DNA of 64,000 nt from Octopus sinensis. Its lineage: Eukaryota. How positions within the stretch are numbered: the first letter of the stretch is position 1; the number at the start of each line of letters is the position of its first letter. The DNA is taken from positions 12,152,001 through 12,216,000 of the forward strand of contig NC_042999.1 of NCBI RefSeq assembly GCF_006345805.1, written 5' to 3'. A program made the position numbers and the translations under genes. Of the stretch, positions 5,561 to 52,250 are shown piece by piece. Under the pieces are notes generated by a model. That model did not search any database and was not told the origin of the DNA. It worked only from the letters and a program-made list of their open reading frames with translations.

Positions 5561-6424
5561 TGATGGCTACACACACACACACACAATTGAAATGCATTTT
5601 GGATTGATTATGATAAGTAGTTTGGGGACATAAGACATCACATTACTATAACCAGGATGACAATGAACTAACACCTTCTCATAGACTCACTAAACATCAA
5701 ACAAATGGTATACCTGTCACAAATAGTTTTTTAAATGTTATTTTAGAAACTTAGTAGATTATTAACTTTTTTTTAAAGTAAATAATATTTGGTAAGTCTC
5801 CCATCATAGAGGTTATTATCATGCCCCAGTATGACCAGAGTCCATTGGTTGAAAATAGCAAACAGAATTTAAACCAAATAAGATGTAGTAAAAGTTTATT
5901 AGCAGCACATGAACCATTGAATCATGATTTGGCATGGTACCTCAGAAAGAAAGCAAAAACCCAGTCAAATTGGCATAGCTACTTCATTAGTTTTTGATTG
6001 CTAATTACTGGCCTAGATAGTGAAAGCAATTAAATATTTTTACCTGATTTATGTTACATTTTTACTGAAATGCCATCTTTCAATTAAATCTGAACACTTT
6101 TCAAACATTTAGAAATGGAAAATTCTAGCAAGCCTACCAGTTACAACAGCTTTAAATCTGTTGAGTGTTTAGTAAAAGTCTCATCAAAATTATTACAAAA
6201 CTGCAATTAACAATAACAAATTCCAATTTTGATAAGGAAATATTTCCTCTTTTTTACTTTATATGATAGAAAAGGTGAGATTTAAAATTTGATTTCTGGT
6301 TTCTTCAATTTAATCATCTCAATTGTCTCCAACAAATGAACTGAAAGTCAAATGAGCAAAAGCAATGCCTGTCATTTGTTTCATTATCGGTAAGTAATAG
6401 TAACTATGTTCTCTCTTAATAAGA

Positions 6425-6631
6425 TTAACCCTTTCGTTACCAACCCAGCTGAAACTGGCTCTGAGTACAAATGTCTTGTTTTCATAAGTTTTGAATTGAA
6501 ATCTGCCACCAAACACCAGCTGAATGAAATCTAAGTTATTTTTCTAAATTCTTTGTTATCATCATCATCAAAAGTAATTGAAAGAAACCTGACAGAGCAT
6601 CTCAACAGAAATACAGTAACGAAAGGGTTAA
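6425..6631. mobile_element. piggyBac-type MITE (TTAA target site)
   Basis: TTAA-CCCTTTCGTTAC (6425-6440) and GTAACGAAAGGG-TTAA (6616-6631): perfect 12-bp TIR with TTAA on both sides. Related degenerate copies near 44850-45034, 46386 and 62753-62970. Confidence 0.75.
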
Positions 6632-6699
6632 TAGAGCACTTGTAACAAGTGAAGACGAACAAAACATATACACTCAGCTTCAATGTGCAAAGAAAAAAA

Positions 6700-12900: not shown

Positions 12901-13690
12901 CGTCTCTTTGACAGAGCTGCAAACCTGGATCAAACGCAGACCGAGAATGGGCGCTTGGTACCTCGAGTGCCGTCAAGCTCTCTCCGCCCTCCACCAAGCA
13001 GGCAATGCGATCGGTTTTAGTTCCACTCTAGTATTGCCCGAGTATTGCTGAACTATGGGTTTATGTCGAACAGCTACTGTCGCGTATAGAACGGATCCGG
13101 CTATCAGCTGAATCCATAGTGAGGATTGCCCTGCTGACCTCCTTTAACAAGGAGGGAAAGGCCGTTTTCCTGTGTCTAGTGGCTGTAGCGAAAGAGGTGG
13201 TATGGTGGACCCGTTTGAAAGGGCTAAGGTCAGACACTTTCCTCTTTGGCCAAGGCCTCATCAACTTTTTCAAGTTTCACTTGAAAAGGAAGGTGAGAGT
13301 AGAGAGGGAAGTGCTGTCTGATAGCAAGTTTACTGAAAGGTGGGTAAACGTCACAAGAATGGCCAGTATAAATGGACCAATTCTGAGGATACACCCGTAG
13401 TATAAAAAAGTATTATAAAAGGAGAAAGGGGCTCTCTACTACCCCCCCCCCCTTCGACCAGGCTCCCATGGCTTTTATGGGTTTTTCCACGAGTAACCTT
13501 TCGAAGCGCCTCCCCTTATTGGGAATTTCAATTGTTATATTTTCGTTGTTATCTCTGGAATTTTTACAGGGTTTTTTGCAAACGGACAAAACCCTTTGTA
13601 ACTTTCGTCCTGTGTTTTGTCCCTTTATGTTTTAATTAATTTTTGTCAGCCCTTGTGGCCAATAAACGAAGTAATTATTATTATATAAAG
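10000..13690 (+). mobile_element. Tx1/L1-clade LINE, ORF2 pseudogenised
   Basis: ORF2 starts at 10371 (MAKLRIGSLNVRGL). APE motifs AYAP and LVGDWN; WKLNASL; RT motifs GRSPGLDGLPYELY, DQSKAFNRVDH, QGCPLS, YADDV, KLLGVWFG. Ends RIHP* at 13400; AATAAA plus (ATT)n tail near 13660-13685. Several stops and frameshifts. Confidence 0.92.
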
Positions 13691-15521
13691 ATGAATATAG
13701 TCCATTCTTTTCATAAATTTCTCAAATTCCATCAAACAAGTGGTATTAAAAAGGTAAAGAGAAATTACCCAGCCAGAGAACTATGTTAATATTTTTGTTT
13801 TCAACAGTTACGTCAGCTGAAGTTGATGAAGAATCATTTGAGAGTTCTGTTTTTCACAGGACATTGCAAGAGTTAGTAGAATGATCTACAAGTTAAAGGC
13901 AGCAAAAGAATACAAGTTCGATCCCAACTGGCACCAAGGTTTTCAAGGCAGAAGTTCAGAGGTATCTCCCCCCCCCATCCCACCTCCGACTTTGTTTTGC
14001 TATAACTTTATACAAATGGCATATTTTCCAATGAAAATTTCCAGAAATAAATATCAGATGATGTAGCAAAAGAATATTTTGGAGGATAGGCAGAGGAGTT
14101 TTGGCTAATTCCCACAAGTCGATTTTGTTCCTCATAACTTTCAGGAAAATGAACATTCTTTAATAAAATTTCCCCATGTACGTTTTAGATGGTACAGATT
14201 ACGATTATGTCGGGAGTTGATGTGTAAAAAAATAGGAAAGAGGACAGATAATTCACACACCTCAACTTTATTTTTAAAAATATCCATTTTTCAGGAATTT
14301 ATGAAGAAACAGAGCCGTTGGGGGGTTGCAGGGTCACACATCTGTTGTTATATCCGGTTTTTAATTAGGGTCATACAACTGGACGGTTATATAAAGATAA
14401 TGCTTGAAGCGATATCACTTGGTAGATTGTCAAACCACAAACTCTTCTTTGGAGTATCTCGAAGTATGTGAAAATACTGGGTTGAAAATCCCTTTTGGAG
14501 ACTCAACAAAATAAATACTATTAATGAATTGCAAGTGGGTAAATCTGGTGAAAAATGAAAAATTGTTTTTATTAAATTTACTCTTTTCCATCCAGTTTTT
14601 ATATATTTTGAAAAGAAAACTCTTTCTGTATAAACTTGTAAATGTGGTGTCAAACTTGGGAAAGTTCTTTTTTTTTTATTTAGTATTTGTCAAACATGGC
14701 ATTAATTATCGTCTTAATTAGTAAAACTCAACTGTTTACAGTTGCATCTTACGGCTAGAGTTTCGGAAAGCTTTGAAAATTCGCATAAATTTCTGGAAAC
14801 TAAAACATGATGCCATTACCGTTTATATAAGTTTATAGGTAAGCAATCGTTGCCAGTTTAATGTAAAGTTATAAATAAAAACGATTCAACATTAAATTGA
14901 AAGACAACTCAATACTTTTAATCGTCATTTACAAAAAGTATGTGTGTGTGTGTATATCTGGAGAGAGAAAAATAAAAATAGATAAAGAAGTATTGTTTGG
15001 TCGAATCGACTCCAGTTTATTGCTTTTGCAGCATTTCTAAAATATATTTTATCGATCTCGATAGTTGACAAGCGACAGCGAGGAAGAAACTTGTCAAAAC
15101 TATTTTGTTGGACACTTTGGTGATTCTCTTAACTTTATATTGCAATGTCAATTAAATTATTAGATTATTTCCGCTAAACACCAGAGCGCATAACTCGAAG
15201 GAAGGGATGGAGGAAGTTTCGAAATTCCTACACTTTCCAAATGTATCATAAACGAGACAGCAACTTTTTCAATTATCAAAATCGAGTCGTCAATTCCGAT
15301 CAACCGAATTTCTAAACCTTACCTTAGATATCGATAAAAATTTCAGACAAATAAAATATACCCTTTCTCATTTAAAATTGATGTGAGAACCTATTTCTAT
15401 GCAAAATGTTGACATAATATAAACAGGATGGAAAATAAGAAATTGTGAATGTTGGGTGAAAATATACTTTTGATGAACTTGAAGAAATTACAACGTTCAA
15501 GATGGTAACCAAAATAAAATT

Positions 15522-15582
<61 letters not shown>

Positions 15583-15600
15583 AGAGAGAAAGAGAGAGGG
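15522..15600. repeat. Compound microsatellite (CA)n(TA)n(GA)n
   Basis: Seen directly; (TA) run about 15537-15580. Confidence 0.95.
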
Positions 15601-16135
15601 CCAATAGGCAAACCTACACAAGTGTACTCGCACGGCTTTGTTTCCTCATAACTTTCAGAAAAATGTATATTTTTAATAGGTATCCGTACATGGCATGTGT
15701 GTGTGTGTGTAGTAAAGGGCCCGGCGGAGAGGTCATCCCTTTCACGAATGCGTAAAAGGGTCTCTACACAAAACGTGCAGTGAGTTCCCGTTCGAACTAA
15801 AGTCTTCCCGGGTCCCATGCAGGGCAGATTATCTCTCCCCATAAATAAATATATATAACGACGAGTCCTCTGAGAAATAACTAAGGATCGTTAATTTCTT
15901 TTTCATTAAGTATAATGCAAGACGAAGAGAGAAAAGTTGTGGATCTCGCCCGCGCCCATAATTGGAATGCGAACCAAGATGGTAACATTCCAGAGGCGGC
16001 CGTGGGTTGCGAAGGTGTTTGGCACCTTTGGAGAGGATCAGGCAGCAACAAGTTATGCCAGTCGTTAACACACATATAGACACGTATATTTAAAGTAGTT
16101 TATAATAATTATTATGACTATTAAATAAATCGAAC

Positions 16136-16229
16136 CTTCCTTGGTCTTCTTTTTCGATGTTAAAGTTCCAATTTTATCGAAGAACGATTCTTCTTTCTTC
16201 TTGGTCGGAGTCGGGTTGGTGTGAGCCAT
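16136..16229 (-). CDS. Parvin: Parvin coding exon 1
   Basis: MAHTNPTPTKKKEESFFDKIGTLTSKKKTKE matches the parvin N-terminus (KKDDSFLGKLGGTLARRKKAKE in vertebrate PARVA). ATG at 16229, phase-1 donor GAA G|gttcga, 94 nt. Confidence 0.9.
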
Positions 16230-34400: not shown

Positions 34401-35140
34401 CATAGTTAAGAGTCACTCATAAAATAAGCAAACAGTTTGAGAGGGACACAGGGACTGCTATGATTAAAAACTCTCCAAGTTTCTAACAGCCACAATTCAA
34501 GACCTAAAACTAATAATACTACAAAGCCTCATCAAAGGAATATATTTTATCATCATCAGTTTTCCATCCTAGCATGGATTGGAGCCTTTGACAGGAGTCA
34601 AACAAAAGACTGTGTGAAGTTCATTTCCCCCACCATGTTCCACTATACGACACCTAGGTCAAGGATCGTCTGCTATATTCCTTGGCCATCCAAAGCCTTG
34701 TGAGTGGATCTGATGGACAGAAACCGACAGTAACCGAGCTCTCTAAGATTTTTATGTTGTTACCATTGAGTGAGAGTATAAAATAAATAGTATCTTCAAT
34801 ATGTAATCAAAATAACACAAGAAGTATTGCAGATATTCAATGATATATTTCACATTTTATGTACAGGATATGATAAAAATAATGCAAATATACACACAGT
34901 ATGTATGTGTGTGTGTATATTCAAATGTCATTTAGCAATTCAATTCCAAAGTGTTTATCTGAAACTATAAAAGGAAATCTTTTTGGAATGTCATTAAAAA
35001 AATGAAGGATAACATCCTGTTGCTATGACTTAGCTGTCTTATGAACTTCAATTTTTACAGAAATAAAAAAAAAAAAAGATCATTCCTTATTGTTTTGTTA
35101 ACAACATTGGGTGAAAAGAAATATAAATGTGCAAGAAGTT

Positions 35141-37552
35141 TTACTTCTTCCGACCACCTCGTTCTTTGAGTTGCAAATTGATGCTTGCTCCATGGGGAAG
35201 ATTGTAAAAGGCTAAAGTATTGGAATCTTTGACAAAGATACCTTCATACTGTAATTTCTGCTTACCAGCAGGAATACTGAGTGCTTCGTTAAGTTTCGCT
35301 TTAATTACAGACACTGAATCAGTAAGTGGTAAAGTAAAGTTGAGCACTTGACCATTGAGGTTCCATTCAGGTTTATCTGGAACGTTTGGCACCAAAACCT
35401 TGACCAAAATCGGGTTCTTGTGTGTTCGCAAATATTCTTCTTCTGAAACGAGAGATTCTTCAGTTTTCTGTCGCTTTGATTGGGTTGGTTGATCATCTTC
35501 CTTTGGTGGTGGGGGAGGAACACTGAAATCTGATGTTGAAACTGGCAGTTGTGGCACTGGTGGTTGTGGGGGACGCTGTGAAATGCCCAAGACATTTCCA
35601 AGTGCAGTTGGTGGTGGTCGAGGTGGAAGAATCACCATACTCTGGGGCACGGGAGGACGGGGCATTGGTGGCATGGGAGGTGCCGGTTGTACAGGAGGTG
35701 GGGGTGGGGGCTGTATCTTCATAATATTTGGAGTCATAGTATTGGTAGGCATAGGTGCTGGTGGCATTGGTTTGGGAGGTATTGGGTGTTGCATTGGTGG
35801 ATGTATTGGTTTTGATGGTTTGGGCATGGCTGGACCAATTTTCTCCTTCTCTTCATCAGGTACTAAACCCTTCACTTTATGAATAACAGCAATCTGTTCT
35901 TCAATGGTGATATTCTCACGAGCTTTCTGTGTTACTTTCTCCATCGAAGCTGTGTGTCCATCCCAGACAACTTTCTTTTCTTTTTTCTCTTCTTCCCCTA
36001 TCTTTTTACCAATCTGAGTTTCTTCAGCACCAATACCGAAAATATCAGTACGGCGTTCAGCCAGTTGTCTCAAACTGCTGCCAATGGCCAAACCAGGAGC
36101 ATAAACTTCTTCTTGCTCTCGCTTTTCAGCAATTGAACGATTGCGTTCTTCAATCCACTTGCGGTCAAGCAAACCAATTCGCATGTGTTCAGGTACTTTA
36201 TGAGTAGGAATTTTTTCACCAGTGATCGGAGACACCATGAAAGAATCAGGATTGGGCTCTGTGCTGATTGTTCGGGCCTTAGGGTTATAATCCTTACGTA
36301 CGATAACTTGATCAGGGGTTGGTGGTAAAGGAGGTGGAGGCTGGGGAATATCACTGGGTGGCGGCGGTGGAGGTTGAGGAGTGATCACCTTGTCTATTTT
36401 TCTTTCTTCGTCGATTTCATCCTCATCTGAACCTTCGTCCATGTCCAGTACTTGGTTATTGTCAGAAGGTGGAGGCGGACGGAGCTGCGGAGGTATCGGT
36501 AGTGAAGGAGGAATAATAGAAGAATGCTTGTTCTTATCAACAAGAACATCTTTTTGTGTTTTACCACCTTTGTCTAGAATGATGTCATCGCCATCCTCTT
36601 CATCTGATTCCACTTCCATTGCAACGTCGTTGGTGTTCTCTCCTTTTTCGTAACGCTCCTGTTGGATGACCCGAGCACCGACTTCTTCCGGGGTTGTCGG
36701 AGAAGGCAGATTGCCCACCTCACTCGCTTGGAAATCAACTGTTTCCACCACAACGAAATCGTGCCAATCAATCTGAGCATAAGCGATACGTTCTTTTTCC
36801 AGGGCATCTTCCTCTTTCCGTCGCTCCCGTTCTTGGTATTTTGCCCACTCAACACGATATTTAACTTGCTCTAAAATGTGTTTACTGACTTGAGACTCTT
36901 TCTTCAGCTTGTTGCTAAGGTCTTTAGGGGGAATTAAAATTTTGGTATATTGTTCAACTAGTTTAGTAAAATAATTGAAAAGACTATGCTGCGGCCTGAG
37001 GAAGTCGAATTGGTAATTCCTCTGTTCCCGATTCATTAAGTTTGTTAAAAACTGACGACCGTTACGGGCCACAAACTGAGCAGTTAACTTGACAACATCC
37101 AGATCAAAAGCCGAGATCGATGGAGGATCAGCAGTAAATTCAAACTCAGCAGGCGGTTCATTAGGAATAATTGGTTCTATATTTTTTATAGGCTCGCTCA
37201 TAGGTTTCAAGGCCATCGCCGCAGTAATAATCTTACTAACAATTGGCTCTTGGCCCTTGCCATCTTTAAATTCTTTAACTTTGTGCTGATAGTATGCATG
37301 GTAGGGATCGGCAGGATTCAAAAAGTTAAACTTTGGGTTATTTACCTCGTTTTGTCTGATCCGACTTTCGAATTCGGGTCCGTTTCGGGCCACAAAACTG
37401 GCGGTTTTGTCAACAATGTTCCTCACTTCTGGCGGAGGATAAATAATACCGATTACAGGACGTGTATAAGTTTTTTCTTCTTCAGATTTCTCTTCCGGTC
37501 CAGTTACTGATTCTGGGAGCAGCAGGCCTTCGGCTTCCACGGCTGGAGGCAT
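35141..37552 (-). CDS. SF3A1: Splicing factor 3A subunit 1 (SAP114/Prp21), single-exon CDS, 803 aa
   Basis: Two SURP domains (IIYPPPEVRNIVDKTASFVARNGPEFE; DVVKLTAQFVARNGRQFL), PRP21-like IDWHDFVVVETVDF, Pro-rich region, C-terminal ubiquitin-like domain ending QLKERGGRKK*. Confidence 0.98.
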   Translation of the reverse strand: MPPAVEAEGLLLPESVTGPEEKSEEEKTYTRPVIGIIYPPPEVRNIVDKTASFVARNGPEFESRIRQNEVNNPKFNFLNPADPYHAYYQHKVKEFKDGKGQEPIVSKIITAAMALKPMSEPIKNIEPIIPNEPPAEFEFTADPPSISAFDLDVVKLTAQFVARNGRQFLTNLMNREQRNYQFDFLRPQHSLFNYFTKLVEQYTKILIPPKDLSNKLKKESQVSKHILEQVKYRVEWAKYQERERRKEEDALEKERIAYAQIDWHDFVVVETVDFQASEVGNLPSPTTPEEVGARVIQQERYEKGENTNDVAMEVESDEEDGDDIILDKGGKTQKDVLVDKNKHSSIIPPSLPIPPQLRPPPPSDNNQVLDMDEGSDEDEIDEERKIDKVITPQPPPPPPSDIPQPPPPLPPTPDQVIVRKDYNPKARTISTEPNPDSFMVSPITGEKIPTHKVPEHMRIGLLDRKWIEERNRSIAEKREQEEVYAPGLAIGSSLRQLAERRTDIFGIGAEETQIGKKIGEEEKKEKKVVWDGHTASMEKVTQKARENITIEEQIAVIHKVKGLVPDEEKEKIGPAMPKPSKPIHPPMQHPIPPKPMPPAPMPTNTMTPNIMKIQPPPPPPVQPAPPMPPMPRPPVPQSMVILPPRPPPTALGNVLGISQRPPQPPVPQLPVSTSDFSVPPPPPKEDDQPTQSKRQKTEESLVSEEEYLRTHKNPILVKVLVPNVPDKPEWNLNGQVLNFTLPLTDSVSVIKAKLNEALSIPAGKQKLQYEGIFVKDSNTLAFYNLPHGASINLQLKERGGRKK

Positions 37553-38632: not shown

Positions 38633-39055
38633 GTGAGTAGAAGGCTGTGTTCCTAATAATTTTTTACTTTAAAATGTGATATTTTCCTTTCTAAGGATAA
38701 TATCCCCCAATACCTTTTGTTACAATGACTTGATTCAAGTCAAATTACTGAAAATTAAAAGGCCGAGTCCATTAAATCACGGGTTTTCGGGTTGCGTTTC
38801 TGAAAACTCTTGCCGTAATGTGGATTTTCGTTATGCGAAACGCATTTTCCATTGACTTTCATATTTGGAGGCAGGTGGGTTTCACATTAGCGGCATTTTC
38901 AGGAGAGCGGTGTTTGTATCCGTAATGCGGGGGATGAATGGGGAGGGATTTATTTCGTTTTAGTAATGTATTTTTTTTTTTGGAAACATCCAATTGTAAT
39001 TTTTGATATCCTGCGAGAATTAGTTTTTCTAATTTTATCTACTTGGATATTTTAG

Positions 39056-39121: not shown

Positions 39122-40048
39122 GTAAGTATTTTATTAATTTCGTACAATTAATTATGCATTTTATTTACTAACGTTGTTCCAGGATACGTCCTCACTGATA
39201 TTTCTTGTGGGATTTCGAGTCATTCAATATCGAACCCCCGTTCCTCGCCCATTGACCCAGCCATAACAAGAATTGCCACGACTCTGGCACTATGGAAACT
39301 TCGCAAATACCATTTTGTTTCTGTTCTTCATCCTTATTCAGTCGATCATTAATGAAGAGGGTTGTATTTGCCACAGAAGTCTAAGACCTTGTGGTTTAAT
39401 GGTCCGTTATTTACTTGATGCTAGGATGTGAAATATCTTTTGTCATCTCTATAAATTTCAAGATAGTTTTTAGGTTTTGCTGTTGGTTTCATCTTACATA
39501 AATTCCAACAAAATGAGCCCCCTCCCCAATGACACGGGCGTCTCCTCTCTTTACCACATATGAATGACTGGTCACCTAATTATTTTTTATCCAGACAGAT
39601 AATGTATTTGTTGAAATAGATTTTTTTCCCCTGTTATGATCTTCTGTAATAGGAGTTGATGTAGATTCGGAATGATTGATAGCTCTAGCCACGTTTTACT
39701 GAGTGAGTAAAAGAGATATTGAGAGCTCACATACTAAGCTTGATGGCAGGCAATGAGTAAAGGAACAGTGTATGCAGAAAGAATCAAGACAGGAGGATGA
39801 GGGAGTAAATGAGTAGTTATGAGAAATTTATTTTAAGATGATGGTTTTCTTTTGAAAACCGGTATTTCATTTTGTAAAAGTTGAATTATAATTGTATGTT
39901 GTGGTTTTAAGAGTATAATTCCAAAGTTACCCTTATGACAGATAACACTAATGAAATACATGTTGTACCCCCCCCCCCCACGTTAATAATACAAGTTTGT
40001 TAAAAGCTTGCCCTCAAGTAATTTCATTGTCACTTTTTTTTTTTTCAG

Positions 40049-40150
40049 TGAAGTATTTAGATTACCTTCGAAAAAGATGTAATGTGAATCCCAGAAGAGG
40101 ACCCTTCCATTTCAGGGCCCCCAGCAAAATTTTCTTTAGGACAGTCAGAG
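40049..40150 (+). CDS. RPL13A: RPL13A exon 4
   Basis: ttttcag|[35 protein letters not shown]|gtaaga, 102 nt. Confidence 0.97.
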
Positions 40151-40206
40151 GTAAGATTTGTTATGGAATATTCTCAATAAGTTTGGCAAAGTTGTTCTGG
40201 CCTGCT

Positions 40207-40277
40207 GTCTGTGATGACCGTACACCGAATTGAATGCAATCAATGAAAGTTCCAATTCATGCACTTCCACCTGAGAC
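40207..40277 (+). ncRNA. SNORD33: Box C/D snoRNA, SNORD33/U33-like copy A (variant guide)
   Basis: gtc-t-GTGATGA (40211)...catgcacttccac-CTGA (40271)-gac, with an outer ggcct/aggcc stem. The D-box guide resembles U33 (catgcactaccat-ctga) and the snoRNA sits in RPL13A intron 4, the vertebrate U33 host intron. Confidence 0.8.
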
Positions 40278-41847
40278 TATAAAGGCCATTGTTCTATTCT
40301 TGTTTTCTGCTCAACTGCTATTTGGTGTAAATGCTACAAAGAAGAGTATCCAAAGTTAATCAAATGTTCTATGATTGTGTAAATGCCTCCATGCAATTCA
40401 GATAGTTTTCGTATGTTTCAAACAAAACTTTTCCCTGTTGGACAGTTACGAGACATTTCCTTCAGTCTGTTGGAAATAGACCCTATTTCTCTCTGCTATT
40501 TAAATAAGGATGATGTGATATCTTAGATAACCTCTAGAACCAAGTGTGGTCTCAGGCAGGTGATATGTGAAGGGGTTAGCAGTGATTAGCGTGTCTGAGC
40601 TGGAAGCTTTAGAAATAGGGATATGCTTTGCAAGAATTATTAAATATCCCAAAGAATTTCATGATCTGCTTTGTACACCAGTCCTTTTCCAGCAGAGCAT
40701 AAGGTTTTTTTTTCATACTTTATATTGCATTCCATAACAGAACAAAATATGTTCTGTTCCCAATTTTACCTGTGGATTGTACACAAAGGGTTGCATAATT
40801 AACTAATGGATTCTAGCCACTTTGATGATTCTATATCGATATGGATGTAGTTTTATAACCATCTGTTAAATAAACAAAATTCCAAACGTCTGGAAATTTC
40901 AGATTACTTCTATATTCAGTTGAAACATTAACCATTGTTAGAAGCTTCAGTATTTGATGATAATTAGGTAGCACAATTCATTGTCGTCACTTTAGCATCC
41001 ATTTTCCCATGCTCCTCACATGTATTGAACAGAATTTATTGAGGCAAATTTTCTACAACTGGGTATCCTTACTGTTGCCAAGTATGGCATTATTTACCTG
41101 TGGCAATTTAACACATAATGATGAAAAGGCAAGGAAACAGTGGCATGCACACACACACCCACACCGTCTGGTTGGCTTCTTTGTTTCCATCTACCAAATC
41201 CACTCAGAAAGTTTTGATTATTCAGACACTTTGGTAGAGGACATCTGTCCAGGGTGCCATGCATTGGGACTGAACCTGGAGTCATGCTATTTGGAAGCAA
41301 ACTTCTTACCATGCAGCCATACTAATTCTCATGAAATTTCACCAGTCAGTACTGACACTATTTTTAATCAGGTTGACCATGACAGGATTTGTGCTCCAAA
41401 CCTAGTTGAAATAGTGTTTTCTGTCAAACACTCTAATGCAGCGTTTCTCAACTGAGGTTCCCTGGAACCCTAGGGTTCTGCAGAACACTGCTCTAATGGC
41501 TTTATGAATTAACCACCTTAAACTCTGCTGATCAAGCATCAATTAATGTTCGTTTCCCAAGCTGACAGGATTTGGTTCCACTGTCAGCTTTGGCGTGGTT
41601 TTCATGGCTGACACATGTTACAGTCTGTTCCACCAGAACTGGTGAGTTTGCCAAGTGGGGTGGCTGGGAAAGCCTCCATCGACTATGTAAGGGGTAGTAT
41701 TTGTGGAGCGAGGGACCTCTAAATGCTAAAGTTCATTTGCCATGTTCTGAATGGCTTTAACATTTTCTTTTTCTTTTGGCAATGCCCTGCTGATTGCTCT
41801 CTTACACTGGCTTCTTTTGTGAAGTAATGCTTTTTTCGGCCCCTTAT

Positions 41848-41913
41848 GTCTATGATGATTTTTCACTGTCATGAAAGTAATGATTATTACACACATGCAC
41901 TACCAACTGAGAC
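41848..41913 (+). ncRNA. SNORD33: Box C/D snoRNA, SNORD33/U33-like copy B (canonical guide)
   Basis: gtc-t-ATGATGA (41852)...ATGA(D')...aatgatt(C')...catgcactaccaa-CTGA (41907)-gac. The guide pairs with conserved 18S GUGGUGGUGCAUG, with the +5 A opposite the U methylated by U33/snR55. Confidence 0.88.
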
Positions 41914-42697
41914 TGGCTGAAATACATTTTACAAATGCCAAAGATGTTTGAGACCAGCTTTGTGTTGCTGCTACATTTATTTCTTTTGACTGTTTTTGTT
42001 AGTCATTGGTTTATCATTATAGTTTGTCTGTTTTTCCATGCTGGCATGGGTTGGATGGTTTGACTGAGGTCTGGAGAGCCAGTGGCTGTACCAGGCTCCA
42101 TTCTGATCTGGCAGTATTTCTACAGCTGGATGTCCTTTCTAATGCCAACTACTCCAAAAGTCTAGTGGGTGCTTTTTATGTGCCACTGGAATGGGAGCCA
42201 GCCAGTCAGGTGGGCCTGGCATTGATTATGTTTCGATAGTGCTTATTATGTGCCACTGGCATGGGAGCCAGTCAGGCGGATCTGGCGTCAACTACATTCG
42301 GATGGTTCTTTTCACATGCAGCTGTCATGGATTGATTTTAGCTAGAAAGTGATAAAACAGGCACTGAGAGAATGAGTTGCTCTTAGCTTTTACATTTCTT
42401 CCATTATATAACCTTTCACTATATTGAAATAGGCTGCTTTCATTTCAATTAATTTTGAAAATCATAAAGAAATTAGTAATATAGCTTTGTCATTAAACTG
42501 AAATTTGGATGGCATTTTACTTTAAACAGTTTATATAAGAACTAAGAGGCTGTCTCAAGCAGATTAGCAAACAACAAATAGAAGTAGTGTGGCTTTATGA
42601 TTGAGTAATGTGTCTGTGTGTGCTGCAGTTTGGTGCGCTGTTATCTAGAGGGATAGAGTATAAGTTCTCTGTAATTATCAAGGTGTTTTGGCCTGTT

Positions 42698-42767
42698 GTC
42701 TATGATGATCATTCACCAAAATGAAGTATTTAATGATTGTACACAGACATGCACTTCCACCTGAGAC
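42698..42767 (+). ncRNA. SNORD33: Box C/D snoRNA, SNORD33/U33-like copy C (variant guide)
   Basis: gtc-t-ATGATGA (42702)...catgcacttccac-CTGA (42761)-gac, with an outer ggcctg/caggcc stem. Confidence 0.83.
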
Positions 42768-43709
42768 TCAGGCCTAAAACCTTTTTTTTTTTTTTTTTTA
42801 GTCTTTGTTACAATATATAAATTTTGTGATTTATTTAGTATAGTTGTAAAAGTGTGAGAGCAGTTTTGTTTCTCCTTAAAAAGTGGGTATATTTGTTCAG
42901 CTGGTTGTGTTGAGGAAAGGAGTGTATTACTCAGGTTTTAAAATCTGTTTCTGTGATGTAATACAATAAACTCTTTTGAGACCCTCCCTGGTTCTATAAG
43001 CTGTTGGATTTAAGGTGATATAAAAGTTGTAAAACATCAGGGTTTCATGTTTATCTTCTGAAAACTAAGAGACAAAAGTTATTTTACTACATTCTTCATT
43101 TTCAAAATTAAATAAGCAGAACTGTATTTTGATGGAAATATGGTAAGAAAAGAGTGAATATTGTGGAGTATTTCTGCTACCATCTTGTCTTTTTATCCAT
43201 TTGGGCAGTATGGCTTGAGACAGATTTATTTGCTATGTCTGTCAAGACAATCAAGTGTTGCGGCTCTCATTTCTTGGAGAAAATAAACAAATTTGATGCC
43301 TGGATGAGATTGGATGATAATGTTTCTCCACTTGACTGTTGAGAGGAAATTGGCGAGGGGCTGCACAACAACTCTGAGGTACCAGGGCCATTATAGTAGA
43401 GACAGTCCAGGGGGACTTTCTCTTGCTGGATGTATGCAGCAGCACCATCTTAGATGAGAACAATTCGTAATTGTGGACTTCACCTGACCTTTATGGTGTC
43501 ACCAATTGTTGAGGGTTGGAGTATTTTATGGCCCTTATCTTCAGGACCAATCTTAGATATTTTAAGGATGTGCTTTTCCAATTAGAGATACTTTGTGTGT
43601 GATCTGCAGTTCCCCACTCTGTAAATTTATGGGGAAAAACGTGAACAATGTTACTGCACTTTTCAGTTATGGAATGTATTATCAGAATTAAAAAAAAAAA
43701 AAGCTTGGC

Positions 43710-43895
43710 ATTGCCCGGTCCTCGTGCCGGTGGCATGTAAAAGCACCCACTACACTCTTGGAGTGGTTGGCGTTAGGAAGGGCATCCAGCTGTAGAAACT
43801 CTGCCTGGTGCAGCCATTTGGCTCGCCAGTCCTCAGTCAAACTGTCCAACCCATGCCAGCATGGAAAACGGACGTCAAACGATAATGATGATGAT
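43710..43895 (+). mobile_element. RTE-tailed retroposon copy in RPL13A intron 4
   Basis: ttggcgttaggaagggcatccagctgtagaaac...ccaacccatgccagcatggaaaacggacgtcaaacgataatgatgatga. Further partial copies near 303-470, 3295-3570, 19370-19520, 28660-28735, 34170-34352, 42030-42330, 47800-47905 and 55865-56040. Confidence 0.8.
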
Positions 43896-44042
43896 TATGA
43901 GATCTGCCTGAGCAAAAATTAAAATTTGCAAAAGAATGTCTAATGCCGTTTGGAGTGTTGATAAATAAGAGTGATGAGATGTGGTGAAATTTGTTTTATA
44001 TATTAGTATTGCTTGTATCATTGTACTTTTGTTTCTCTTTAG

Positions 44043-44188
44043 GTATGCTTCCTCATAAAATTAAGCGTGGAAAAGATGCTCTTGGCCGACTGAAGGCATT
44101 TGAGGGAATCCCTCCTCAGTACAACAAAAAGAAGCGAATGATTGTTCCAGCAGCTCTCCGAATTATTCGTTTAAAACCTGGCCGAAAG
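44043..44188 (+). CDS. RPL13A: RPL13A exon 5
   Basis: ctctttag|[49 protein letters not shown]|gtaaat, 146 nt. Confidence 0.97.
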
Positions 44189-45083
44189 GTAAATATAGAA
44201 TGTTTTGTTGTTGGTCAGATCAGCCTCTTGCAGTTTCTCCTGTGCATTCAACACTGTCATCACTCGAGTTAGAACCGACGACCTTTTGGACACAAAGCAA
44301 ATCTTTAGAATTATAGCAAACGACTGACTCGGCTTCCTTCTCTGGTATGGTATTGAGTACTCTGGCTTTTGGCAGTCAATGCTACACACTCTTTTCGGTC
44401 ATTTAACTGTGGCCATGCTGGAATACTGCCTTTAGCCTAACAAATCAACCCCAGGACTTATTCTTTGTAAGCCTAGTACTTATTCTGCCAGTCTCTTTTG
44501 TTGGACTGCTAAGTTACATCAGTTTTCAGGTGATGGTGGCACAACAAACACAGAAGCACAAATACATATATGTATGTAATTATGTGCATACATATGATAT
44601 GCTTCTTTCAGTTTCCATCTACCAAATCCACTCACAGGCCTTTGGTTGGCCTGGGGCTGAGTCTGGGACCGTGTGGTTGGGAAGCAAACTTTGTGCGTGG
44701 TTTAAAATACAGAAATTGTTGACTTGGATTCATTAAGTTTTGTTTAATTCTGTTTGAAACGAAAGAGACTTACGGATGTATATTTGTGATTTCCTCTATG
44801 GAAATAAAATATATTTTCTGAAAAGCCCTGCTTTTAATGTAGCATTACTTTAACCCTTTTGTTACAAAACTTCTACGGAAGTACAAGGATTTTGAAGATG
44901 ATAATGAATTTATTAACATAATTTATCATGCTGGGACCATAAGATAGTGTAAAATTTTGATGGTGGGGTTTTTGGTGATTTTAAAATGGAAATTTCTATA
45001 TTATAGAACCTGAAGGCAATTTCAGAAGGGTTAATTGCTTTTCCACAATTGATCCACTCTTATGAACTCAGTATATCAGCTGT

Positions 45084-45149
45084 GTTAATGATGACTTTAA
45101 TTACCTACATTGCTTGATTCTTCTATGAGAATTAACAAAATCTGACAAC
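45084..45149 (+). ncRNA. SNORD34: Box C/D snoRNA, SNORD34/U34-like copy A
   Basis: gtt-a-ATGATGA (45088), D' guide ttacctacattg-c-TTGA complementary to conserved 28S CAAUGUAGGUAA (U34/snR62 site), CTGA at 45142, then caac. Outer tcagctg/cagctga stem. Confidence 0.88.
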
Positions 45150-45946
45150 TCAGCTGATTTACAAGTGTTCTTATGACTTCATCACTTTTTCTGTGTTGGT
45201 ATTTCCATTTACTCTCGGTCTCGGTCATTGCCAGGACTCTTGATATGGGCAATGTCTTAGTTTCAAAGAGTATTTATCAGTGTCCACTGATTACATGTTT
45301 TCAGCTTATGGTCTCAATATACAGTTTGTATAAACTTCACATTGCTTTTTCAAATTTATTTTGAACCCTTTTAATACTAGCCTGTCTGAATTCCCGTGTA
45401 TAGAACACAAATTTGCAAACATTTTCTGCCAATTCTAAAATAAAAAAGTTGAAGGATTCTATGGGGTGCTTAGACCAGAATTCTCCTCTGTTTGGTTGTG
45501 TCCCTTGTCTTGACATCCTGTGGTAGTTGTGGGCAACTGTTGCTCTCAGATATGCAATGTTGTTTGCCTGGAAAATGGTTGGCCCTGCTTTAGAACCATT
45601 AAGAGCTTATGAAAAGAAGGGCATTTGGTTGTAGATCTACCATAACAAATTCTGTCTAACCCATGCGACCATGGGAATGTGGATATTTCTTCGTAGCAGC
45701 ATTACCATCGTCTTCATTTCATGTTCAAGTCGCTGAACTGAAATAATTTCATCTTTCTTTCTAATTACATTTTGTAATGACAATAATTTCATCTTATTAA
45801 TAAGATCGATGAGAGCAAGTTAACGACGAAGTACTGAGTTACCTCTCCTACCATTTCATTTGCTGCTGGTTTTCTCTATTTAGATACAGCACATTGCATA
45901 TTTCAGTTAGTAAATCTCACTAGTTTGGTCTCAATATATCAGCTGT

Positions 45947-46013
45947 GTTAATGATGACTTTAATTACCTACATTGCTTGATTCTTCTATGAGAATTAATC
46001 AGAATCTGATAAC
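45947..46013 (+). ncRNA. SNORD34: Box C/D snoRNA, SNORD34/U34-like copy B
   Basis: Near-identical to copy A: ATGATGA at 45951, guide 45964-45975, TTGA, CTGA at 46006. Confidence 0.88.
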
Positions 46014-46681
46014 TCGGCTGATTTATAAGAGCTCTGTATTGGCAGGTCTTTTTTACTCTGAAACAGTTTAATCTCAACTTTTTGACTGACCTTTCAATTG
46101 GTCTCCTGTTTGAAGGTCTCTAATTATTTGGCATAAGTCCTTCTGAATTTAACTTGTGACAATGCAATAATTAGGATGTCTCATGAGGATTTAAAATGTG
46201 TGAGTGAATGAGTACAAAACATGGTTAATATCAGCCAGAAGTTATAAATTGTGATGATTATTCTCATGTTAAAACGTAATTTCTTGGTTTTCTTTGTTAA
46301 AATTATTAACAGCCACTAAACATCTCAGTTTAATGACAAGTTTTGATGCTTTTACCAAGTACAAAGAGAATCTTAAATTGGTTTTTTAACCCATTTGTTA
46401 CCATATTTCTGTTGGGATACATTGTCTTTGTTTCAGTTACATTTGAAAAAGAATATTGTAAAACTTGCAACGTAAATGAACAGATTTTTTTAGCACGAAG
46501 TTTGTACCTCAGATTTAATTTGTAAATGTGCTCCTTGGGGATAACTTTCCAAGAAGTTCTTTACTATATAATATTTAAGTATCGCTCTATAAAAATAGTT
46601 TCTTGGGAGCAGAAAGGCATTTGGCTGTTAAAAATCTACTTTGTTGTATAAATGATTGCCCTTTCTGGTGGAGTTAGCTGT

Positions 46682-46750
46682 GTCGATGATGATTATAACA
46701 TTTACCTACATTGTTTGACGATTGATGTAAAGAAACCAAACACTGATGAC
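46682..46750 (+). ncRNA. SNORD34: Box C/D snoRNA, SNORD34/U34-like copy C (more diverged)
   Basis: gtc-g-ATGATGA (46686), ttacctacattgt-TTGA (46702-46718), CTGA at 46743, then tgac. Only the boxes, the D' guide and the outer agctg/cagct stem are shared with copies A and B. Confidence 0.88.
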
Positions 46751-46914
46751 TCAGCTGATTCTGTCCTTGTTGCAGTTTCCTCCCTTGCCATCCTATTGTT
46801 GCTGTTTACTGCAACTGTCCAAATGTGAACCAATGTCACATCTTGGTTGCTTTCGTTTATTTATTTTTACAAGGAATTTATTAAATCTGACATTTTGAAA
46901 ATTCTATTTCACAG

Positions 46915-47037: not shown

Positions 47038-47126
47038 GTAAGTTTTTCATTTCTTAATATGTTATTTTGTTCCAAACTTTTTTGTGCTATTGGTATAATA
47101 TTTTCCTTTGTTTTCTTCATTTACAG

Positions 47127-47236: not shown

Positions 47237-48274
47237 GTTATATTGGCTAAGATAAGATTTTGTCTGATGTGTTTCATTATACAACCGAGTGGTCACTTGT
47301 GCATACTTTAGCTCTGCAAACATCGAATAAAATGAATACAAGCTATGTAATTAGCAGAGTCTACAGCATATAAAGAGTGACTGTTATCTTGTGTTTTCAG
47401 TTGGTGAATATCTTTGAACATCCATTTTTCCATGGATCAGACAGTTTATGGGAGACATGCGTAAATAACCTTTTGATCTGCAACACAAACTACAGGCAGC
47501 CAGCCAGCCACCTGCTAGCCTACCAATCAGGTGTCTGCTAGCTAGATCAATTATATTCTCACCAAACAGTGTGATATGTGGTTGCTCCTAAATTCAAAGA
47601 CCCTCCCTGGTGAATGATGTACCCCTCAGCAGAGATTAGTCATTAGCAGTCTTTCATCTCCAAGCCTTTTTTGCAGAATCATTACATGCAAGTACAGCAT
47701 CAACCATCAAACCCCCAGCCCTCCCTCCAACGTATAATTTACTTTAAAAAGAAATACTTTATAAGGGAAAAACGTGAGAAAAAAAAGAAAAATTAATAAT
47801 CTAATTTCTGATGAAGCCTTCTGGCTTCACAGACCCCAGTAGAACCGTCCAACCCATGCTAGCATGGAAAACTGACGCTAAACGATGATGATGATGATGA
47901 TGAAAAACATGTGCCTTCTCGCACATAAACACAGTATTCACACATATACAAACACGCGCAGATGCAATTATTGAAGTACTAAATGGCACGTCAAATGATA
48001 TTTAATCGTGTGGAACATTTTGCATGCATATCAATATTCTAAAGTTGGACATACTATCCCTTATCCGAAAGCTGCTTCAGACAATTAGGAAGGGTTCCCG
48101 ACTCGTTGCACCGTCTGCTTTCAATCTTGGATTGTGATTCGGCTCAGCCCAAACTCTCTCAGTTTTTGTCTGCTGTTGCCTACTCCTACAAGGATTGCAC
48201 CTGTTTTTTGTTCCTGATTTAACCCCGATTTGTCCTAGAGCCCATAGAAGATTGTTTTTAGTCAACCATCCATC

Positions 48275-49426
48275 ATGTCAGCTACCTACGCATCGAATCT
48301 GAGATCTGCAAGTAGGGCTTCTCATCAAGATGATGGTCCTACCAATAGTCAGCTCAACGAACAGTTGCTGTTGCTCAAACAAGAGGTTGAGCACCTAAAG
48401 TCTGTTGTTGCTCTCTTACTGAATAAACAGTCTCCTGTTGACGCAGAGTCACCCTTGATTTCTTCCCTGGAGACGTCCAAACCGAGGCGGCCAAAGAAGG
48501 CGAAGGAACCGGCGGTCGTTTCTGCACATGATCGTTCCTGTGCGGATTCTTCCTCATCTGCCTTTTCAGTCCCGGAGGTTCCCCAACCTAGTTTGAGGGG
48601 CGTAGACTCAAACCCACCTGAAGACTGTTGTTCTCCCCAAAAGAAGAAACGTAGTCAAAACTCCAGAGGGGCAGATTTGGCTATGAAACCTGATCACGAT
48701 AAAATCTGTTTGGATTCTCCTTCACTTGTCCTTCCCATTAATGCCATTGCTCAACCAATTCTGAACGATCTCGATGTGGGTTCATCTGGGGAGTGGTGCT
48801 CCCCCAAACCGAAGAAGAGGCAGTGCAGTTCCAAACCAGGCGGGAAAATTATGACCACTAAATCCATTCCGATCGACCCCACAATCCGACATAAGTCCAA
48901 TGGCTATGAAACCACCCTTTCGAAATCCTCCAATGAAGAATCGAATACCGCAGCTCATAGAGAACTTTTTGCCCACTCAAGATCGGCAATAATATATGGC
49001 AATGCTGAATCCACCTGTGATACAGGCATAAACCGCCTAAAAGATGACATTAATTTTGTTTCCGTTTTGGTTGGAAAATTGTTCTCTGTGAACGAAAATG
49101 TCAGTGTTCTTAAGGTCGCTCGGCTAGGAAGATTCCAAGCGAACCCAACCGCAGATACTAGACCACGCCCAATAAGGGTAATCTTTTCTTCTGATCGGGA
49201 GGCTTCAGTCTTTCTGAACAGAGCTCAGACGCATGCCTGGGAGGACCCCAATATGGGTTTTCGCGAGGAATACTCACTAAGAGAGAGAATTCGCTGGAGG
49301 AACCTGATATCCGAGCTAAAGATGAGGAAACAAATGGGAGAGAAGGGTTTACGAATCCAAGGTGGACAGATAATCAAGTCCTACCTCTGGTCCCATGCTG
49401 TAGTGCTGACAGGGAAAGTGATGTGA
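48275..49426 (+). CDS. LINE ORF1 protein, 383 aa, intact
   Basis: N-terminal coiled-coil (QLNEQLLLLKQEVEHLKSVV), low-complexity linker, C-terminal CR1-ORF1-like block (AIIYGNAES...VARLGRF...RPRPIRVIF...ELKMRKQMGEKGLRI). Confidence 0.85.
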   Translation: MSATYASNLRSASRASHQDDGPTNSQLNEQLLLLKQEVEHLKSVVALLLNKQSPVDAESPLISSLETSKPRRPKKAKEPAVVSAHDRSCADSSSSAFSVPEVPQPSLRGVDSNPPEDCCSPQKKKRSQNSRGADLAMKPDHDKICLDSPSLVLPINAIAQPILNDLDVGSSGEWCSPKPKKRQCSSKPGGKIMTTKSIPIDPTIRHKSNGYETTLSKSSNEESNTAAHRELFAHSRSAIIYGNAESTCDTGINRLKDDINFVSVLVGKLFSVNENVSVLKVARLGRFQANPTADTRPRPIRVIFSSDREASVFLNRAQTHAWEDPNMGFREEYSLRERIRWRNLISELKMRKQMGEKGLRIQGGQIIKSYLWSHAVVLTGKVM

Positions 49427-52250
49427 GGGCAAATCGAAGTGAAGTTGATACCCCCGTCAACGATGCTATCTCTGATGCCCTTTATTCTGCTTGTTCCCCA
49501 ACTCCCGCCCCTCAGACTTCGCAGCTCAGCATCGTCTACACCAACTCGTGCTCCTTATTCCCAAAGTTCAGTGAACTATTTACACTGGCCCTACGCGACT
49601 CCCCTGATGTGATAGCTATCACCGAGACTTGGCTGACTCCAGCAGTAAAGGACTCAGAGATCCACCTGCAGGGCTACGTCCTTTTCAGATGTGACAGAGG
49701 AAAAAGGCGAGGTGGAGGTGTTGCTGTGTATGTTAAGTCTGAGCACAAACCGTCCTGCGGTATTCTACCCACAAATGCTCAACCTACAACCAAATTCGAT
49801 GCTGTCTATTGCAAGCTGAGCCTATCTGAGTTTTGCCTGCCCGTGTTGGCTGTCTACAGGACGATGCTCATCTACTCGAAGCGATAAGATTCGTTTCAGC
49901 TTCGCATGACTGCTTGGTACTAGGCGACTTCAACGCTCCCACGATCGATTGGCCCGCATCAATTTGTACAACATCTTCCCGGTTCGGCCAGGCCCTTCTT
50001 GACGTGGCTGAAGATTGTTTTCTATCGCAACATGTTGAATATCCGACAAGGCATCGGTCTGGGCAGCAGCCATCTATGCTAGATCTGGTATTCTCCTGCT
50101 ATCCAAGATCAGTGTCAGACGTATCGGTGTGCGCCCCTCTTGCCAAGAGTGATCATGCGGTCCTGAAGTTCGTCATGCACACAACTTTTTCCACGCCCAC
50201 GATTACTTCGCTGCCACGTAGAGTCTTCTCTGCAATTAATCTTGAAATTCTAACCGAGGCTTCCGCGCTTCTGGACTGGCGTTCCCTGATGACGTCCTCA
50301 GTTGACGAACTATGGTCGTCCCTCAAAGCATATGTAATCTGTTTGACTGACCAGGCAGTTCCCGTTGGACTTCCCAAGAGGAAGAAACACAAGCCCTGGG
50401 TGACGAAGAAGGTTAAACGAGAACGTCGACTCAGAGATATTGCTTGGGCTGAATTCAAAAATCTGGATTCGACTGCAGCTTTTGAGGTGTACAAAACTCA
50501 ACGAGACCGAGCCGTGAAAATTGAAAAGAAAGAACGCTTCAGTTATGAATACAAAATCGCGGCAAATGCCAGTAGCAATCCAAAAACCTTCTTTGCCCAT
50601 GTCCAGCGGAATTCCCGCTTGAACAACCAGATTGCAACGTTGGTAGACTCAACAGGCGTATCGATTGAGGACCCTTATCAACAGAATCAATTATTTGCCA
50701 AGGCTTTTTCAACTATTTTCAAACAAGATGATGGTCGTGAACCCCCTCCATTTGATAGATCGGTACCTCCAATGCTTCGATTGATCATCACGTGGGACCA
50801 AGTCAAACGTGTTATTCAAGGCCTCGATGTCAACAAGGGTCACGGCCCTGACGGCATACACCCACGGGTTATCAAAGCGTTGGCTCCGGTCATCTGCGAG
50901 CCCTTAACACGACTATTCAATATGTCATTGGCGACGGGTGTTATACCTGCAGACTGGAGAACAGCGATAATCTGCCCAATTTTCAAGAAAGGGAGCCGCG
51001 AAGACCCGCTTAACTACCGACCGGTTTCCCTTACATCAATAATCAGCAAGATGTTCGAAACCATCCTTAAGAAAAGTATGATGCTCCACCTCCTAAACAC
51101 AGCCTCGATCACTGATTCCCAACACGGCTTCGTGCCGAAGAGATCATGCTTGTCCAACTTACTAGTAATGGAAGAATTGGTGACGCGCATCCTCGATGAT
51201 AGTGATGCTGTTGACATCGTTTTATTGGACTTTGCCAAAGCTTTTGACTCGGTAAACCACCGCCTACTACTTGTCAAGCTTCAAGCATATAGTTTCCATC
51301 CGGATATTGTACGATGGGTTGGTGCCTTCCTCTCAGATCGCTCTTTCCAAGTTCAAGTTAATGGTTCGCGGTCCGACGTCTCCAGTGCGAGCAGTGGCGT
51401 GCCTCAAGGTTCAGTGCTTGGGCCCTTGTTGTTCTTAGTCTTCATAAATGACTTGCCCGACGACCTCACGCAACACACCCTTCTATTTGCCGACGATATC
51501 AAACTGGTCGCTCCTCGCGGTAGTATAGAGGATCTTCGTCGATGCCTCCACCAAATTTGGAAGTGGTCTAACGATTGGGACCTGTGTCTGAACGTGTCAA
51601 AGTGCTGTCGGCTCTACTCCTGCAACTCAACTTGATTTTGAGCCGATCAGGTAAAGGACCTGGGTATCTTGGTGGATTCCTCCTTTTCGCCTTCGGCCCA
51701 GTGCGTCCATGCTGCCAACAAAGCGCGCGGAATTCTGTTTTTGATTCGATGGTCATTCGGAATGCTCACAGCAGCCATATTCCTGCCACTCTATGTCACG
51801 CTGGTGAGACCCATATTGGAGTATGGGATTCAAGCCTCTTCTCCTTATCTCCTCAAAGACATACAGCACCTCGAAAGAGTCCAGAGGCTGGCTACCCGCA
51901 TGGTTCATGGTCTCAAAAATTTGTCCTACGAAGAAAGGCTGAGGACGCTCGACCTTTGTTCTCTTGAAAAACGCCGCCGCCGTGGTGATCTCATTCTCGC
52001 CCACAACATCATGAGCAGGAAGTGTAACCTCTCGAAAGAGCTGTTCTTCACTCCTGCTCCGGAGCGTCGGCTGCGGGGTCATTCCGAAAAGCTCTACCTG
52101 CGACGATTTCATCTCAATCGAAGGAGAGGAGCTTTCTCCGTCCGGGTTGCGGATCCGTGGAACAAGCTGCCAGACGAGATGGTGAAGATGCCGACGACCG
52201 CTTTGTTCAAAGCCTCCCTGGACCTCAAGTGGCCTGAACTCTTTACATGA
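49423..52250 (+). pseudogene. LINE ORF2 (APE + RT) broken by two short frameshifting deletions
   Basis: YTNSCSL, DVIAITETWL, DRGKRRGGGVAVYV, frameshift near 49860, LGDFNAPTIDW, LDLVF, SDH, GHGPDGI, NYRPVSLTS, LDFAKAFDSV, PQGSVLGPLLF, FADD, frameshift near 51610-51660, VRPILEY...WNKLP. Confidence 0.9.

Follow-up and report, generated by a model that had tools for sequence, protein, structure and literature searches.

What becomes of a methylation guide when the single base that selects its target nucleotide changes? The question is raised by a 64,000-nucleotide stretch of Octopus sinensis chromosome CM016861.1 (the window, by whose positions all O. sinensis features are given here), where intron 4 of RPL13A carries three genes for small nucleolar RNAs (snoRNAs) of the box C/D type, resembling SNORD33 (U33). 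In snoRNAs of this class, which are stable RNAs of about 70-80 nt bound by fibrillarin, Nop56, Nop58 and Snu13, methylation falls on the nucleotide that pairs with the fifth base upstream of box D (+5), and few eukaryotic methylation guides are as conserved as SNORD33. Octopus has one canonical copy, B, next to two selection-maintained copies, A and C, that differ only at the base selecting the modified nucleotide, which is U (T in the DNA) in place of A. Has a eukaryotic C/D snoRNA been kept for pairing alone, as a chaperone or a stoichiometry competitor, or has one substitution given it a different target? Both answers would say something about the way snoRNA families acquire new roles after duplication. 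To judge from their sequences, copies A and C probably no longer methylate the usual site in 18S ribosomal RNA (rRNA). The reading favoured here, tentatively and at rather less than even chances, is that both would still dock on that site, in helix 34, without methylating it, the U:U mismatch leaving the job to copy B.

All three copies lie on the + strand and are built as box C/D snoRNAs, with a C box of the RUGAUGA type, CTGA as D box and two stems, GTCT/AGAC inside and GGCC outside; the expected fold is predicted for each. The precursor of copy A (40199-40287), the first of the two T-type copies, is closed by an outer stem GGCC at 40199-40202 and 40284-40287, both stems appearing in the predicted fold; within it follow the inner stem GTCT (40207-40210), the C box GTGATGA (40211-40217), the guide (40258-40270, with the +5 T at 40266), the D box (40271-40274) and GACT (40275-40278). 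Copy B, the canonical A-type (41838-41919), has its C box ATGATGA at 41852-41858, its guide at 41894-41906 with +5 A at 41902, and its D box at 41907-41910. Copy C, again T-type (42690-42774), has outer-stem GGCC segments at 42690-42693 and 42771-42774, within a perfect 6-bp outer stem in the predicted fold, a C box ATGATGA at 42702-42708, a guide at 42748-42760 with the +5 T, read from the sequence, at 42756, and a D box at 42761-42764. Copies A and C both have orthologues in O. vulgaris and O. bimaculoides, in all of which +5 is T. The initial annotation had given three guide strings, two of them with U at +5, and these stand letter for letter in the window: CATGCACTTCCAC-CTGA at 40258-40274 (A), CATGCACTACCAA-CTGA at 41894-41910 (B) and CATGCACTTCCAC-CTGA at 42748-42764 (C). 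The guide pattern has three matches in the window, against 0.10 expected in shuffled sequence.

SNORD33 (RF00133) is the best Rfam family for all three copies, at 31.3 bits for A (40204-40280), 36.3 bits for B (41845-41916) and 34.6 bits for C (42695-42770), each below the gathering score of 44; cephalopod U33-like copies score 34.8-42.3 bits for this family and gastropod copies in the same host gene 49.6-58.9. Measured against the Rfam SNORD33 consensus CAUGCACUACCAU, the A/C guide differs only at +5 and at the freely varying +1. The host gene, RPL13A, was placed on the + strand by tblastn with a human RPL13A query, and its splice sites were read off the sequence; the product matches O. sinensis/O. 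vulgaris RPL13A (P0121). Exon 4 (40049-40150) and exon 5 (44043-44188) enclose the 3.9-kb intron 4 (40151-44042), which opens with GTAAG at 40151 and closes with TAG at 44040-44042. The next intron, intron 5, holds three SNORD34 copies on the + strand (45080-45153, 45944-46016 and 46678-46754, spanning 45080-46754) that score 42.6, 39.6 and 42.7 bits against a gathering score of 38. The U33-like copies are found where SNORD33 is expected, in the RPL13A intron upstream of the one bearing SNORD34, and this order, U33 then U34, is also that of human RPL13A. Their host intron, their boxes and 11 of the 13 guide positions place A and C in the SNORD33 lineage by descent. They depart from SNORD33 in two respects, the Rfam gathering score and, more important, the Watson-Crick pair at +5 with the consensus 18S target.

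The history of the +5 base was followed through RPL13A loci of other species, retrieved via the protein, giving seven mollusc species for comparison. The three copies of O. sinensis read T, A, T at +5, as do the three of O. bimaculoides; O. vulgaris, where copy B is duplicated, has four copies reading T, A, A, T. Outside Octopus the base is A in every copy (32/32): four in Argonauta hians, three in the cuttlefish Acanthosepion pharaonis, seven in the gastropod Gigantopelta aegis and 18 in the bivalve Mercenaria mercenaria. In an alignment of all copies, AUGCACU-N-CCA-N-CUGA is invariant outside two columns, +5, which varies only in Octopus A and C, and +1, which may be A, C, G or U. From +2 to +12 the copy B guide equals both the Rfam consensus and the other mollusc copies, bar one Gigantopelta copy with a G:U-compatible A-to-G change at +12. 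When the cephalopod loci were scanned with Rfam at an E-value threshold, no SNORD33-like copy beyond these came to light.

Since all 32 non-Octopus copies have A and the three Octopus species share one pattern, the +5 U is read as derived and, among the sampled molluscs, confined to Octopus; on the same comparison it is placed between two splits, that of Octopus from Argonauta and the later one of O. bimaculoides from the O. vulgaris group. The variant is judged to be no assembly artefact, because it recurs in two further, independent Octopus assemblies. Copies A and C share upstream flank and stem sequences, and the simplest history would be a single A-to-U change in their common ancestor followed by duplication. 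The initial annotation had proposed a search for the U variant in other octopods, with its absence from relatives counting against the idea; it is present in both O. vulgaris and O. bimaculoides.

Multi-copy U33 arrays in a single RPL13A intron are common in molluscs, in contrast to the vertebrate arrangement of one snoRNA per intron. The Mercenaria array has its 18 copies at a period of about 182 bp (locus 10061-15295), the seven Gigantopelta copies span locus positions 11729-16146, and the four Argonauta copies, at 5647-7223, are near-identical. In O. vulgaris the duplication of copy B is a recent tandem event with identical flanks (locus positions 6980 and 7836) and gives two A-type and two T-type copies, where O. 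sinensis has one copy B. A second RPL13A-like locus of O. vulgaris was considered as a source of extra U33 copies and rejected, being intronless and without the guide motif: on another chromosome, OX597817.1 (locus 6001-6351), it consists of an intronless 116-amino-acid RPL13A-like open reading frame (ORF), probably a processed retrocopy annotated as a gene, with no snoRNA motif nearby.

Are the U-bearing copies still snoRNA genes, or are they on their way out? The latter would mean that the +5 change inactivated the guide, that copy B suffices, and that A and C linger because little time has passed or because some weak, guide-independent constraint holds them, such as snoRNA-protein particle (snoRNP) assembly or effects on the host intron. 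Between O. sinensis and O. bimaculoides, intron 4 diverges at a background of 8-9.5% of aligned sites, and the overall substitutions in the A and C precursors, 5/89 and 6/84, are only slightly below it, as such drift would predict; in O. bimaculoides, moreover, copy C has lost its D' box (ATGA to AAAA), and the guide taken by itself shows no significant constraint between the two species. The distribution of the changes tells against drift. When the positions of A and C are divided into functional classes, set from standard C/D anatomy after the data had been seen, none of 78 constrained positions (C box, D box, inner and outer stems, guide +2 to +13) is substituted, compared with 11/95 elsewhere (Fisher one-sided p = 0.001), and the chance of 0/78 at the intron background rate is about 0.001. 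All 11 substitutions lie in the spacer, in loop regions or at +1, and both stems are intact. The paralogues tell the same story: the initial annotation had noticed divergence in the remaining halves of A and C, and indeed their internal spacers are identical at only 24 of 39 positions (62%), whereas their guides agree at 13/13, which has a probability of about 0.002 under the spacer rate, that is, under neutrality. Gene conversion as the cause of this guide identity is argued against by the bases flanking the 21-nt block of guide, D box and stem, which differ between A and C. Because of the 0/78 against 11/95 contrast and the paralogous guides kept at 13/13 beside spacers at 62%, A and C are held not to be decaying but to be maintained as snoRNA genes under purifying selection, with the guide kept in its U form; drift toward loss is accordingly given a small probability. 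With the T-type guide kept in three Octopus species, within constrained snoRNA genes, the variants are not junk.

The spacer has a feature of its own. In nearly all cephalopod U33-like copies a motif CAC-(C/T)-(A/G)-(A/G/T)-N stands just before a D'-like TTGA or ATGA, in the window at 40218-40244 (A), 41859-41877 (B) and 42709-42727 (C); copy B of O. bimaculoides is without CAC. Allowing wobbles, the motif could form a duplex (8 bp in copy C) with UUGGUG in 18S, about 12 nt downstream of the main target, and differences between copies within it are mostly transitions that preserve pairing; it could be an accessory pairing element or only a remnant. The motif is not shared by the gastropod or the bivalve, and the sequence upstream of D' varies across the molluscs; a guide function for D' was considered and set aside, with no D' target put forward.

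If A and C are kept, what can they pair with? Their usual partner was represented by the eukaryotic consensus 18S helix-34 site GUGGUGGUGCAUG (the helix with GGUGGUGCAUGG), known in general and deduced here from guide complementarity. Neither the window nor any of the retrieved loci contains rDNA. Copy B forms pairs with the consensus site from +2 to +13, among them A:U at +5 and, at +6, a U:G wobble. In copies A and C every position but +5 is paired (+1 to +4 and +6 to +13, 12 of 13 in all); at +5 U stands opposite U, which bears out the initial claim that their +5 base would mismatch the canonical 18S uridine. Predicted free-duplex energies with this site come to -21.5 kcal/mol (B), -19.6 (A) and -19.5 (C); copy A of O. 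bimaculoides, with A at +1, comes to -17.7. Slippage along the 18S GGU repeats, or a bulge, was tried as a way of rescuing the +5 pair and rejected, no alternative register pairing better. The T-type guide is a conserved guide with an N+5 mismatch: it is retained in three Octopus species and two paralogues with 12 of 13 pairs to the assumed consensus 18S.

Could A and C methylate the canonical 18S uridine all the same, and be merely extra, slightly weaker U33 copies? Their predicted free-duplex stability comes near that of copy B, and human rRNA has sites that are fully methylated despite rare internal mismatches, one of them U-U (SNORD49A/B; PMC5027482). Yet a Watson-Crick pair at N+5 is reported to be indispensable for methylation, in vivo as well as in vitro (PMC6009581), and mismatches close to box D are strongly detrimental to the reaction (PMC4063771, citing Cavaille and Bachellerie). 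The retention of +5 A by all 32 other mollusc copies likewise indicates strong selection on this base. That the two copies still methylate their old target is quite improbable, more so even than drift.

The mismatch would vanish if the rRNA had changed along with the guide. The initial annotation had offered a variant 18S, or a second ribosomal DNA (rDNA) type, as one way out: with A at the helix-34 position, A and C would be canonical guides for it. Such a variant would account for the conservation of both guide types, and no point speaks for it directly. The target position sits in a universally conserved helix, each of the three Octopus species keeps copy B with its +5 A, and in the related Argonauta and cuttlefish all guides are A-type. 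A metagenome scan of 241 million records for GTGG[V][R]GTGCATGGCCGTTCTTAG, of qualitative value only, as it came without a positive-control count of the canonical sequence, returned six contigs with a base other than T (four C, one G, one A), none of them reading GTGGAAG. Given the retention of copy B, the 32/32 A and the six non-T contigs without GTGGAAG, this way out is very improbable. A canonical 18S is further supported by the duplication of copy B in O. vulgaris.

Docking without methylation, the favoured reading, would take the following course. A single +5 A-to-U change would have occurred in the ancestor shared by A and C, after the Octopus lineage had parted from Argonauta, and the changed gene would then have duplicated. 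Copies A and C would still assemble into snoRNPs and dock on GUGGUGGUGCAUG in helix 34 of 18S, with 12 of 13 positions presumably paired. The target uridine would face a U, and the +5 Watson-Crick pair required for fibrillarin-mediated 2'-O-methylation would be absent. Because of that missing pair, A and C would be pairing-only snoRNPs at the 18S site, perhaps a folding chaperone or a competitor tuning methylation stoichiometry, and copy B would remain the sole guide for the 2'-O-methyluridine corresponding to human 18S-Um1326. Docking of A and C on 18S is plausible on the predicted duplexes. As an explanation of the locus, docking across the mismatch, an alternative that the initial annotation had not weighed, is equally good as or better than those it had.

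Several points tell against docking. The pairing was computed with the consensus 18S, not with Octopus's own. Only about 10 bp form inside the ribonucleoprotein (PMC8053127) and guide +1 is considered unpaired (PMC5027482), so the duplex within the particle would consist of 3 bp, the U:U, the U:G wobble and another 5 bp, and would fall well short of the stability estimated for the free duplex. Compared between O. sinensis and O. bimaculoides, the guide by itself has 0 changes in 24 positions, which is not significant (P ~0.12); the evidence that the guide is constrained comes chiefly from setting paralogue A against paralogue C. A retargeted guide would account for the constraint data just as well. 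Nor is there an obvious reason for selection to keep two non-methylating competitors of copy B.

Retargeting is the other answer to the opening question: the A-to-U change at +5 would have made the ancestor of A and C a perfect 13-nt guide for another RNA containing GUGGAAGUGCAUG, with G:U pairs allowed, be it an rRNA, a small nuclear RNA (snRNA) or a messenger RNA (mRNA). A conserved rRNA guide would thus have been neofunctionalised and redirected to an adenosine elsewhere, possibly in an mRNA; the retargeted copies may methylate that adenosine or, by wobble pairing, a G. New snoRNA specificities are known to arise in this way, when a gene duplicates and its guide then mutates. The T-type guide, at 13/13 in two old paralogues and with its elements conserved between species, argues that it pairs with something, and its duplex with the perfect complement GUGGAAGUGCAUG is predicted at -23 to -25 kcal/mol, better than with the 18S site. 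The searches for such a partner yield little. In the 64-kb window, GTGGRRGTGYRTG was sought with at most one mismatch, 0.67 matches being expected by chance; the exact complements are only the antisense strands of A and C themselves, and the other matches are GT-rich repeats and one site with a single mismatch on the minus strand at 7510-7522. Across the window and the RPL13A loci together, no target turned up. The T-type target pattern over positions +2 to +11, with G:U allowed, is UGGAAGUGCA. To our knowledge none of U1, U2, U4, U5, U6, U6atac, 5S, 7SL and the conserved cores of 18S and 28S offers more than about 7 contiguous pairs. A match of 12-13 nt is expected many times by chance in a transcriptome, so that a match alone would prove little, and no extended complementarity is available because the sequence 5' of the guide is conserved neither between A and C nor between species. 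Retargeting is nevertheless a serious, if rather unlikely, competitor of docking. If it were true, 2'-O-methylation could affect the processing or even the A-to-I editing of the target RNA, though the editing part, taken alone, is speculative and very improbable.

The surroundings of the array offer further observations. The O. sinensis locus taken from GCA_006345805.1 is base-for-base identical to the window from position 34753. An SF3A1-like gene with Surp, PRP21_like_P and ubiquitin domains lies on the minus strand at about 34753-37550, head-to-head with RPL13A and some 200 bp upstream of it, an arrangement kept in Octopus, Argonauta and cuttlefish (fetched loci, 385-2800). Just 3' of RPL13A, on the + strand at 48275-52250, sits a retrotransposon of the non-LTR (non-long terminal repeat) type. 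Its ORF1, of 383 amino acids, has no match in Pfam; the ORF2 that comes next codes for endonuclease and reverse-transcriptase domains (RVT_1, E = 8e-32) and is broken across several frames. The RPL13A introns are largely filled by interspersed fragments resembling short interspersed nuclear elements (41150-41330, 42030-42300, 43720-43900, 44600-44700 and 47830-47900), which contain ...CCATGCTGGCATGG... and GATGATGATG tails and match other spots of the O. bimaculoides locus in both orientations.

Other snoRNAs of the host gene also deserve mention. The D' guides of the SNORD34 copies read CCTACATTG, then C or T, then TTGA, and differ only at the base beside the D' box; here too it is the free +1 position that varies, as it does among the U33 copies, which provides an internal control for ordinary variation. 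Human RPL13A hosts both SNORD32 and SNORD35. An Rfam E-value scan of the other RPL13A introns (38635-39046, 39128-40048 and 47044-47126) detected homologues of neither, and any Octopus guide for the neighbouring methylated guanosine of 18S (human G1328) would have to sit outside RPL13A. In the literature RPL13A is the host of SNORD32, SNORD33 and SNORD35A, with SNORD33 the guide for 18S-Um1326 (PMC6466398). A search of the literature on octopus and cephalopod snoRNAs found nothing relevant.

Among known systems the nearest is SNORD33/U33 itself, whose yeast counterpart is presumably snR55. The Octopus copies have the same box C/D architecture, the same host gene and the same intron order ahead of SNORD34, and the D guide CAUGCAC-U-N-CCA-N-CUGA matches the family consensus at 11/13 positions in A and C and at 12/13 in B. 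Octopus A and C differ in having U, not A, at +5, in scoring below the gathering threshold, and in belonging to a set of three copies in one intron, where SNORD33 has one. Pairing without modification has its own precedents: U14, through its domain A, and snR190 are pairing-only chaperone box C/D snoRNPs, in which a conserved antisense element binds pre-rRNA without methylating it. These have dedicated sequences of their own, whereas A and C would derive, and recently, from a methylation guide, and their pairing-only role is putative.

For retargeting the model is SNORD115 (HBII-52), an orphan C/D snoRNA that matches the HTR2C mRNA perfectly over 18 nt and sets its +5 position opposite an A-to-I editing site there (PMC4063771). 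It stood behind the idea, in the initial annotation, of a C/D guide with +5 facing an mRNA adenosine. The resemblance ends with the target: SNORD115 has its 18-nt match to a known mRNA, while for A and C only their own antisense strands match within the 64-kb window.

Docking without methylation finds its closest parallel in archaea. Conserved N+5 mismatches occur in four Pyrobaculum C/D small RNA (sRNA) families, sR33, sR116, sR25 and sR56, and are read as pairing without modification (PMC6009581). With a conserved guide of this kind already documented, the Octopus U33 variants are less surprising and, as they stand, a modest curiosity. The Pyrobaculum sRNAs are archaeal and form single-copy families, whereas Octopus A and C are two of three paralogues beside a canonical copy, and pairing is deduced from the organism's known rRNA in the one case and from the consensus 18S in the other. 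The likeness lies in complementarity that is kept while the base at the methylation position is mismatched, and it extends in one instance to the substitution itself: Par sR09 carries an A-to-U change giving U:U at N+5 (PMC6009581), identical to that of copies A and C.

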